A stretch of DNA of 64,000 nucleotides from Zootoca vivipara (lineage: Eukaryota), in contig NC_083278.1 in the NCBI RefSeq assembly GCF_963506605.1, positions 120,280,001 through 120,344,000 of the forward strand, read 5' to 3'. The position numbers and the translations under genes were made by a program. Within the stretch, counting starts at the first letter, position 1. Every line of letters starts with the position of its first letter. The notes beneath the pieces were generated by a model. That model worked only from the letters and a program-made list of their open reading frames with translations, had not been told where the DNA came from and made no database searches. Shown one piece after another: positions 45,830 to 46,234 of the stretch.

Positions 45830-46234
45830 GAGGGCCTGCTCTTGTAGCATACGGTAGATATCACCATCATGTAACGGAGGAGGTGGAAAGTCAGGTCGAT
45901 GGAGAGCGGCGGGTCGCGGTGCTTCGGGCGCTCGGCCAGGCGGCGGCGCAGCAGCTCCACGTCGTGGCCCGAGCGCGGCAGCGAGCGCACCAGCAGGGCA
46001 GGGCCACCCCGTCGGGCCCCGGAGCCGGCAGCGGGGGTGGGAGGGGCCAGGCGGCGGCAGCGGCGGCACGGTCCTCCCCTAGGAGCAGCAGCCGCAGCCG
46101 CAGGCTCAAGTCGCTCTCGGCGCTGCCGTCGAGGACCGGCGCTGGCCTGACTCCGAGAGCCGCATGTGACACCAGCAGGAGCGAGGCCACGAGGATGGGC
46201 AGCTGCGCCCGCCTCGTGCTGGGGTGGTCCAGGC
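45830..46234 (-). pseudogene. UCN: Urocortin 1 pseudogene, coding exon
   Basis: Mature-peptide signature [14 protein letters not shown] (45874-45915); signal peptide RRAQLPILVASLLLVSHAALG. Lesions: ACG at the start position (46215-46217), frameshift near 46000, KHR at the processing site, second frameshift before QEQA, and no amidated C-terminus. Confidence 0.85.

Follow-up and report, generated by a model that had tools for sequence, protein, structure and literature searches.

A dead urocortin copy in Zootoca vivipara, most likely a 3'-truncated duplicated pseudogene

Introduction

Peptides of the CRH family need their C-terminal helix and amide to bind the extracellular domain of the receptor, and Ucn1 knockout mice are viable, with altered anxiety-like behaviour and hearing. 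Human UCN is flanked by MPV17 and TRIM54. The same two genes flank ucn1 in fish, and a description of the fine-scale synteny of UCN in squamates was not found in the literature. UCN1 is reported to be conserved across sauropsids and to have been retained in all sauropsid groups examined (PMC9353778); given this retention, its loss in a reptile lineage would be notable.

For Zootoca vivipara an intact urocortin is on record (XP_034965425.1, 'urocortin [Zootoca vivipara]'; here P0001), a protein of 143 aa with a full CRF domain. Going by its accession series, we take it to belong to the RefSeq annotation of the 2020 Zootoca vivipara assembly. The Isle of Cumbrae is the source of the animal sequenced for it and of those behind the DToL assemblies, so that the intact and the broken UCN occur together within either a single population or a single genome. 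Here we describe a broken copy of the gene. The UCN copy is dead but the hormone is in all likelihood not lost, and the copy is most likely a 3'-truncated duplicated pseudogene. No prior description of a truncated UCN pseudogene in Zootoca vivipara was found.

Materials and Methods

The window is the whole stretch of Zootoca vivipara DNA that was analysed (64 kb), and all positions refer to it. Pfam CRF matches were judged against a cut-off of 22.1 bits. Logan contigs of two Zootoca vivipara sequencing runs, each from a separate study (X2 and X5), were compared with the window, together with those of a single run from a related lacertid (X12, organism B) and with raw RNA reads of Zootoca vivipara (X21). 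The compared interval was 45000-46590, with the microsatellite at 46594-46685 lying outside it. It is our guess, from the same year and the three libraries, that X5 stems from the animal of the 2020 assembly.

Results

Structure of the UCN copy

The minus strand of the window holds, at 46777-45742, a urocortin-type gene with a promoter, exon 1, an intron and a coding exon (Table 1). Its signal and first pro-region part is 94.7% identical to residues 2-76 of the Zootoca urocortin (tblastn), from which it differs by G36D (46111) and by an Ala run that has 6 residues where the protein has 9, and the first frame reads TRRAQLPILVASLLLVSHAALGV...GPDGVAL from the ACG. The frame of the mature peptide continues as ...STVCYKSRPSAL...IISV past the junction instead of into the C-terminal end: beyond the last UCN-like residue, 37 residues unlike the CRH family lead to the stop at 45744-45742. 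A processed pseudogene was considered and is excluded by the retained intron (46684 to 46235); the promoter is retained too.

Table 1. Features of the UCN copy and of its neighbourhood, in window positions.
Feature	Position	Strand	Remarks
IF-2B domain, EIF2B4	21641-22030	-	
FERM C-terminal domain, SNX17	33624-33908	+	
C2H2 zinc-finger gene, ZNF513-like	39758-40651	-	
Read-through tail TVCYKSRPSALPLSPPRLLYEIPLGINGETRDAIISV	45742..45855	-	no UCN homology, no CRF match; stop TGA 45744-45742
Junction, UCN homology to unrelated single-copy DNA	45851..45860	-	organism B contigs align to 45860 and 45851
YMMVIS, diverged remnant of QMMEIS	45856..45873	-	last UCN-homologous stretch
Mature peptide, N-terminal 14 residues, intact	45874..45915	-	Pfam CRF positions 1-16 and alignment of relatives
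Remaining pro-region, second frame	45916..45996	-	P87H (45965), L101P (45926), R103H (45920)
Tandem duplication GCCCT GCCCT, 5 nt	45995..46004	-	shifts the frame
Signal peptide and first part of the pro-region	45999..46214	-	tblastn and codon map
ACG at the initiator position	46215..46217	-	ATG in runs X2 and X5
Intron, 450 nt	46235..46684	-	acceptor ttctag; purine-rich microsatellite inside
Presumed non-coding exon 1	46685..46725	-	ends at donor GTG/GTGAGA, GT at 46684-46683; 5' end estimated from the TATA position
Putative TATA box TATATAAA	46742..46749	-	assigned to the exon 1 promoter by position
Putative CRE-like octamer TGACGTCA	46770..46777	-	upstream of the UCN copy; pattern match and sequence reading
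KRAB-box exon	49050-49271	-	
PP2C, PPM1G	61599-62051	-	

Directly after the donor of exon 1 begins a (GAA/GAG)n purine-rich microsatellite of ~90 nt (46594-46685). At the other end of the intron, the last 45 nt ahead of the canonical start (46218-46262, minus strand) are open and in frame from an ATG ATG (MMFCSSPLLGLDHPS); this intronic in-frame ATG ATG (46262-46257) opens a frame of 123 codons. The urocortin model of Podarcis muralis (P0003, NCBI, 153 aa) begins with a homologous N-terminal extension, MFCSSPPLGLDRSS. Either an upstream start has been conserved in transcripts that retain the intron, or the extension is an artefact of annotation common to both; we treat it as a variant of annotation and do not read it as a sign that the start is used. 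Just upstream of the promoter, at 47100-47300 (minus strand), lie two copies of a short element (…ggggttggactagatgaccc.tggggtccct.ccaact…), which could possibly mark the edge of a copied segment if the copy is a duplicate.

Lesions of the UCN copy

At 46217-46215 (minus strand) stands the ACG that the earlier note on this DNA had seen, at the place of Met1 in all six squamate urocortins compared. The earlier note had also placed the signal/pro region and the mature-peptide part in different frames, which our mapping confirms (46214-45999 and 45996-45856); the break is caused, however, not by a deletion of about 1 nt near 46000, as was then supposed, but by the 5-nt tandem duplication GCCCT GCCCT at 46004-45995. 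The damage reported for the processing site is likewise real, the site reading RPKHR/D here against RLKRR/D in relatives: PKHR/D is found in the window and in X2, and LKRR/D in X5, in organism B and in all lacertid proteins. By its sequence, the change from LKRR to PKHR would have weakened the multibasic cleavage site.

The amidated C-terminus is missing, as had been stated: a protein-versus-DNA search found no SVGK anywhere in the 64-kb window, and the C-terminal Gly-Lys amidation signal and the stop are absent from the copy. The Pfam CRF domain (PF00473) matches only at 16 of its 38 model positions (1-16), with 21.7 and 23.6 bits, i.e., around the cut-off. Nothing in the copy is homologous to the Zootoca urocortin beyond Ser122. 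The QEQA that had been noticed in another frame after this point is a chance match, since UCN homology stops at ~45856-45860 and gives way to unrelated single-copy DNA. The same applies to PRLLYEIPLG as a possible decayed C-terminus of urocortin; the DNA left of 45851 is single-copy, non-UCN and also present in organism B, and because organism B has letters within 45783-45804 that put a stop into the UCN frame, it was never UCN coding sequence. An exon split by a transposon was rejected as well, there being no C-terminal coding part in the 64 kb and a flank of single-copy depth in all runs.

Compared with the intact protein of the same species, the copy shows about nine substitutions, two indels and one truncation (among them M1T, G36D, Ala run 6 vs 9, the 5-nt duplication, P87H, L101P, R103H, Q117Y and E120V). 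As the earlier note had concluded, it is disabled: the ATG is gone, the frame is shifted, the cleavage site is damaged and the amidated C-terminal half that binds the receptor is absent. Judged on its letters, the copy cannot yield urocortin, whatever its origin, because it lacks the 21 C-terminal residues with which the peptide binds its receptor, together with the Gly-Lys amidation signal; a repaired frame would still leave only 14 N-terminal residues of the peptide (20 with YMMVIS), followed by unrelated sequence.

The changes are unevenly spread. Seven substitutions and the 5-nt duplication fall within ~140 nt beside the junction (45856-45997), roughly 5.6%, against ~1.2% elsewhere in the exon and intron, figures that rest on the protein-level comparison and on two runs; in YMMVIS, the protein comparison implies three substitutions in 18 nt. 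Decay of CpG sites was rejected as the source of the excess on the right side, because the changes are of mixed kinds and several of them create CpG. Such a cluster would fit error-prone repair or replication at a rearrangement, and we infer that these clustered changes arose together with the rearrangement. The locus may therefore be an example of mutation clustering at a rearrangement junction (a deletion breakpoint, if the two forms of UCN are alleles).

Intact urocortins of squamates

A word search with the open frame returned six intact urocortins, all with the full CRF domain (1-38; 57-59 bits), from Zootoca vivipara, Lacerta agilis, Podarcis muralis, P. lilfordi, Rhineura floridana and Candoia aspera. 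The closest matches of the copy are the lacertid urocortins (84-89% identity), and a conserved 13-residue urocortin motif is invariant in the alignment, which supports the UCN orthology of the copy. Among the lacertid urocortins the C-terminal end is identical from the RLKRR/ cleavage site onward. With an intact conspecific protein (XP_034965425.1) and five further squamates with intact UCN, the lineage-specific loss of a neuropeptide that had been proposed is not borne out, and on these sequences there is no ancient loss of UCN in squamates. Within the 64-kb window tblastn gave no second UCN match, so that a tandem duplicate inside the window was rejected. A word search for read-derived fragments with the 53-aa junction peptide returned no candidates.

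Sequencing runs across the locus

From 45000 to 45903, across YMMVIS and the junction, X2 and X5 have contigs that equal the window, with 0 differences and 0 gaps in 904 nt, and one contig of each run (record 9 in X2, record 17 in X5) crosses the junction without differences. Right of the junction, in ~690 nt, X2 differs from the window at 8 places and X5 at 13; with evenly spread differences the chance of such a distribution would be about 0.432^8 (1e-3) for X2 and 0.432^13 (2e-5) for X5.

The two runs carry the same alternative letter at 46038, 46111, 46216, 46410, 46423, 46481 and 46557. Among these, 46216 reads G>A (plus strand) in all depth of both runs, which gives an ATG start, and 46111 reads T>C, which gives Gly36; ACG, D36 and the window's letter at 46038 were thus seen in the contigs of neither run. 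X5 lacks the five duplicated letters (gap at 45993, depth 68.9/68.9) whereas X2 keeps the duplication, and Pro87, Leu101 and Arg103 are present in X5 and in organism B where X2 has the letters of the window (H87, PKHR). At all five replaced positions the letters of X5 equal the residues of P0001. At 46349-46453 X5 shows both sequence classes side by side, with depths of 33.3 and 35.6. Two classes, a window type and an intact type (that of XP_034965425.1), suffice for nearly all differences; Logan contigs lose one branch of a bubble, and the contigs of each run may be mosaics of both classes. Of what the earlier note had expected from reads of an intact gene, the ATG is thus restored in X2 and X5, and the frame and the KRR site in X5, whereas both runs keep the truncating junction.

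In X2 as in X5, the junction-spanning contig runs as far as 45903, and its neighbour begins at 45874. This overlap of 30 nt equals k-1 for the 31-letter words of Logan and is therefore read as an unresolved branch of the assembly graph. The branch sits where UCN homology begins to fail, at the tac codon 45873-45871 (Gln in relatives), and neither run has its contigs broken on the left side of the junction, at 45851. Some further contigs, and one RNA read, match the window no further than ~45860-45903 and then diverge from it. That the break is due to a 30-mer shared with CRH1 or CRH2 is unlikely, since the peptides differ: those of CRH1 and CRH2 read S-L-D where UCN reads S-I-D.

Depth, which is not a copy number, is 69-84 in X5 over the part with 66-79% GC and 49.7 in the flank with 49% GC, an excess in the wrong direction for single-copy GC-rich DNA; in X2 it is 25.6 in the GC-rich part and 23.2 in the flank, again not to be read as a copy number. 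In organism B, a contig of 1444 nt (record 8) aligns to 45860-45993 and has 1310 more left-hand letters unlike the window, and a contig of 739 nt (record 4) aligns to 45303-45851 and has 138 more right-hand letters unlike the window; the two sides of the junction are at least 1.3 kb apart in organism B, or they are not adjacent there. The RNA run X21, 6% of which was read, yielded six partial reads, none of them covering the UCN exon.

Genomic neighbourhood

The genes of the window follow one another as EIF2B4, SNX17, the ZNF513-like gene, the UCN copy, the KRAB exon, an RNF19-like gene and PPM1G. This order matches human 2p23.3, with UCN, KRAB and the RNF19-like gene added between ZNF513 and PPM1G; MPV17 and TRIM54 are not neighbours of the copy.

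Repeats were seen on the left of the copy and beyond. At 45216-45540 lies an interspersed repeat in which many contigs pile up in three DNA runs at 3-8x the depth of the flank, with joints and loose ends, and into which most of the few RNA reads of X21 fall. A repeat family of at least four copies sharing an open frame (37685-37984, 41944-42318, 43904-44200 and 56460-56756, plus strand) is probably a retrotransposon-derived element common in the genome.

Discussion

On balance, we consider it probable that the copy is a 3'-truncated, decaying partial duplicate of UCN, situated between the ZNF513-like gene and PPM1G, and that the intact gene is found elsewhere in the same genome. The copied segment would have kept everything from the promoter through exon 1 and the intron to codon ~122 of the coding exon, and would then have been joined at 45851-45860 to unrelated single-copy DNA. 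Later lesions would include the change of ATG to ACG, the 5-nt duplication, three or more replacements, the cleavage site among them, and the shorter Ala run. The intact UCN, of the XP_034965425.1 type, would most likely lie outside the window, probably beside MPV17 and TRIM54, and every animal would carry two sequences, the truncated copy on its unique left flank and the intact UCN continuing elsewhere. An intact orthologue elsewhere with a dead duplicate here was the alternative that the earlier note itself had named to its own reading, and it is probably what this genome holds.

We infer that the two sequence classes represent two loci rather than two alleles from the one-sided contig break, the alternative letters shared by the runs, the excess depth of X5, the edge of variation at the junction, the position away from MPV17 and TRIM54 and the retained intron and promoter. 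In addition, the decay is heavy for an allele in one island population with a heterozygosity of 0.46% (the value for the Zootoca population), which favours an old duplicate. The two-locus reading is weakened in several ways: the two-class pattern is drawn from contig mosaics and would be explained just as well if both animals were heterozygous; X2 shows no excess depth of its GC-rich part over the flank and no intact-type letters at 45920-45997; in X5 all bubbles but one were resolved to the intact type; and a second UCN is absent from the 64-kb window. The interval between ZNF513 and PPM1G could also be the normal place of UCN in squamates.

Alternatively, the window might hold the true and single UCN locus, with a null haplotype segregating in the population: a deletion of at least 1.3 kb would have removed the 3' end of the coding exon, followed by the duplication and the changes in the cleavage site and, in the assembled haplotype, by ACG and G36D, with intact alleles persisting beside it. 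We regard this, the main rival, as possible but rather unlikely. It accounts well for the nested lesions, which pass the four-gamete test (X5 has the junction only; X2 has in addition the 5-nt duplication, PKHR and H87; the window has in addition ACG and D36), and it agrees with the intact protein on record from the same island population, with the minimum of 1.3 kb between the sides of the junction in organism B, with the full gene structure in a neighbourhood of the 2p23.3 type and with the equal depth of the GC-rich part and the flank in X2. However, it is at odds with the contrast between 0 differences in 904 nt left and 8-13 events in ~690 nt right of the junction, and it meets a difficulty whichever way the intact alleles are placed: if present in X2 and X5, they should also break the contigs at 45851, where there is no break, and if absent, they leave the break at 45874-45903 and the extra contigs unexplained. 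Heterozygosity would further require a 1.4- to 2.3-fold excess of X5 coverage at 66-79% GC, and a CDS divergence of ~2.5% is high against the population heterozygosity of 0.46%. That a decayed UCN1 null haplotype occurs at appreciable frequency in wild island lizards, some animals possibly being homozygous, is in our view doubtful; homozygotes are conceivable because X2 shows only the frameshifted pro-region. Were the two forms allelic, a well-studied population would contain natural UCN1-null lizards, in effect knockouts for a stress and appetite neuropeptide conserved elsewhere among vertebrates.

Far less probable than either is the unitary pseudogene of the earlier note, i.e., a loss of UCN1 in the lineage of the assembled animal. 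The several independent lesions of the assembly, the junction shared by the window, X2 and X5, the lack of a second copy in the 64-kb window and of a second Zootoca urocortin in the protein collection searched would all agree with it. Against it stands the intact 143-aa XP_034965425.1, annotated for the same species and assigned to the 2020 Isle of Cumbrae assembly, with which a species-wide unitary loss becomes very unlikely; both other runs have ATG, one of them has the frame and the KRR site restored, a graph branch and extra contigs lie exactly where homology ends, and UCN1 is reported to be conserved across sauropsids (PMC9353778). Errors of consensus or joining in GC-rich DNA (the region has 66-79% GC) are similarly improbable as a general explanation, and they are excluded for the junction, the duplication and PKHR: in both X2 and X5 the junction is crossed without a difference, and the duplication, PKHR and H87 are present in X2. 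The argument that so many lesions speak against an assembly error therefore stands for the junction, the duplication, PKHR and H87, but not for ACG and D36, which were seen in the assembly only and, with the letter at 46038, in the contigs of neither X2 nor X5. Even these private differences are substitutions, not the usual type of long-read error, and the 18-chromosome Zootoca assemblies are based on HiFi reads, if the window stems from one of them. More generally, a broken copy in one haplotype-resolved assembly does not amount to the loss of a gene before the whole genome and other individuals have been checked.

Comparison with known systems

Compared with the lacertid UCN1 (XP_034965425.1; PF00473), the copy has the same organisation, with a TATA box and a CRE, a first exon without coding sequence, one intron and only one coding exon; its signal/pro region is 95% identical and the N-terminal 14 residues of the mature peptide are identical. 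It differs in lacking the ATG, in the +5 frameshift, in PKHR for LKRR and in a CRF match of 16/38, and residues 123-143 with the stop codon are replaced by unrelated DNA. Primate GULO is an example of a unitary pseudogene, a type defined by the lack of any functional counterpart in the genome, and the copy resembles that type in its multiple disabling lesions, in the intact gene of its relatives and in a possibly corresponding chromosomal neighbourhood (of the 2p23.3 type, not beside MPV17 and TRIM54), but it differs in the intact copy recorded for the same species and in the intact-type letters of X2 and X5. With regard to the Ucn1 knockout mice, homozygous lizards would be their natural counterparts if the allelic reading were true; we saw no sign here of lizards without an intact UCN. 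A duplicated (unprocessed) pseudogene is matched in the promoter and intron that were kept, in the cut at one edge of the segment and in the further decay, and also in the intact gene on record for the same species, the two-locus structure being read here from contig patterns only. Taken together, the evidence suggests a commonplace pseudogene that exists alongside a functional gene.
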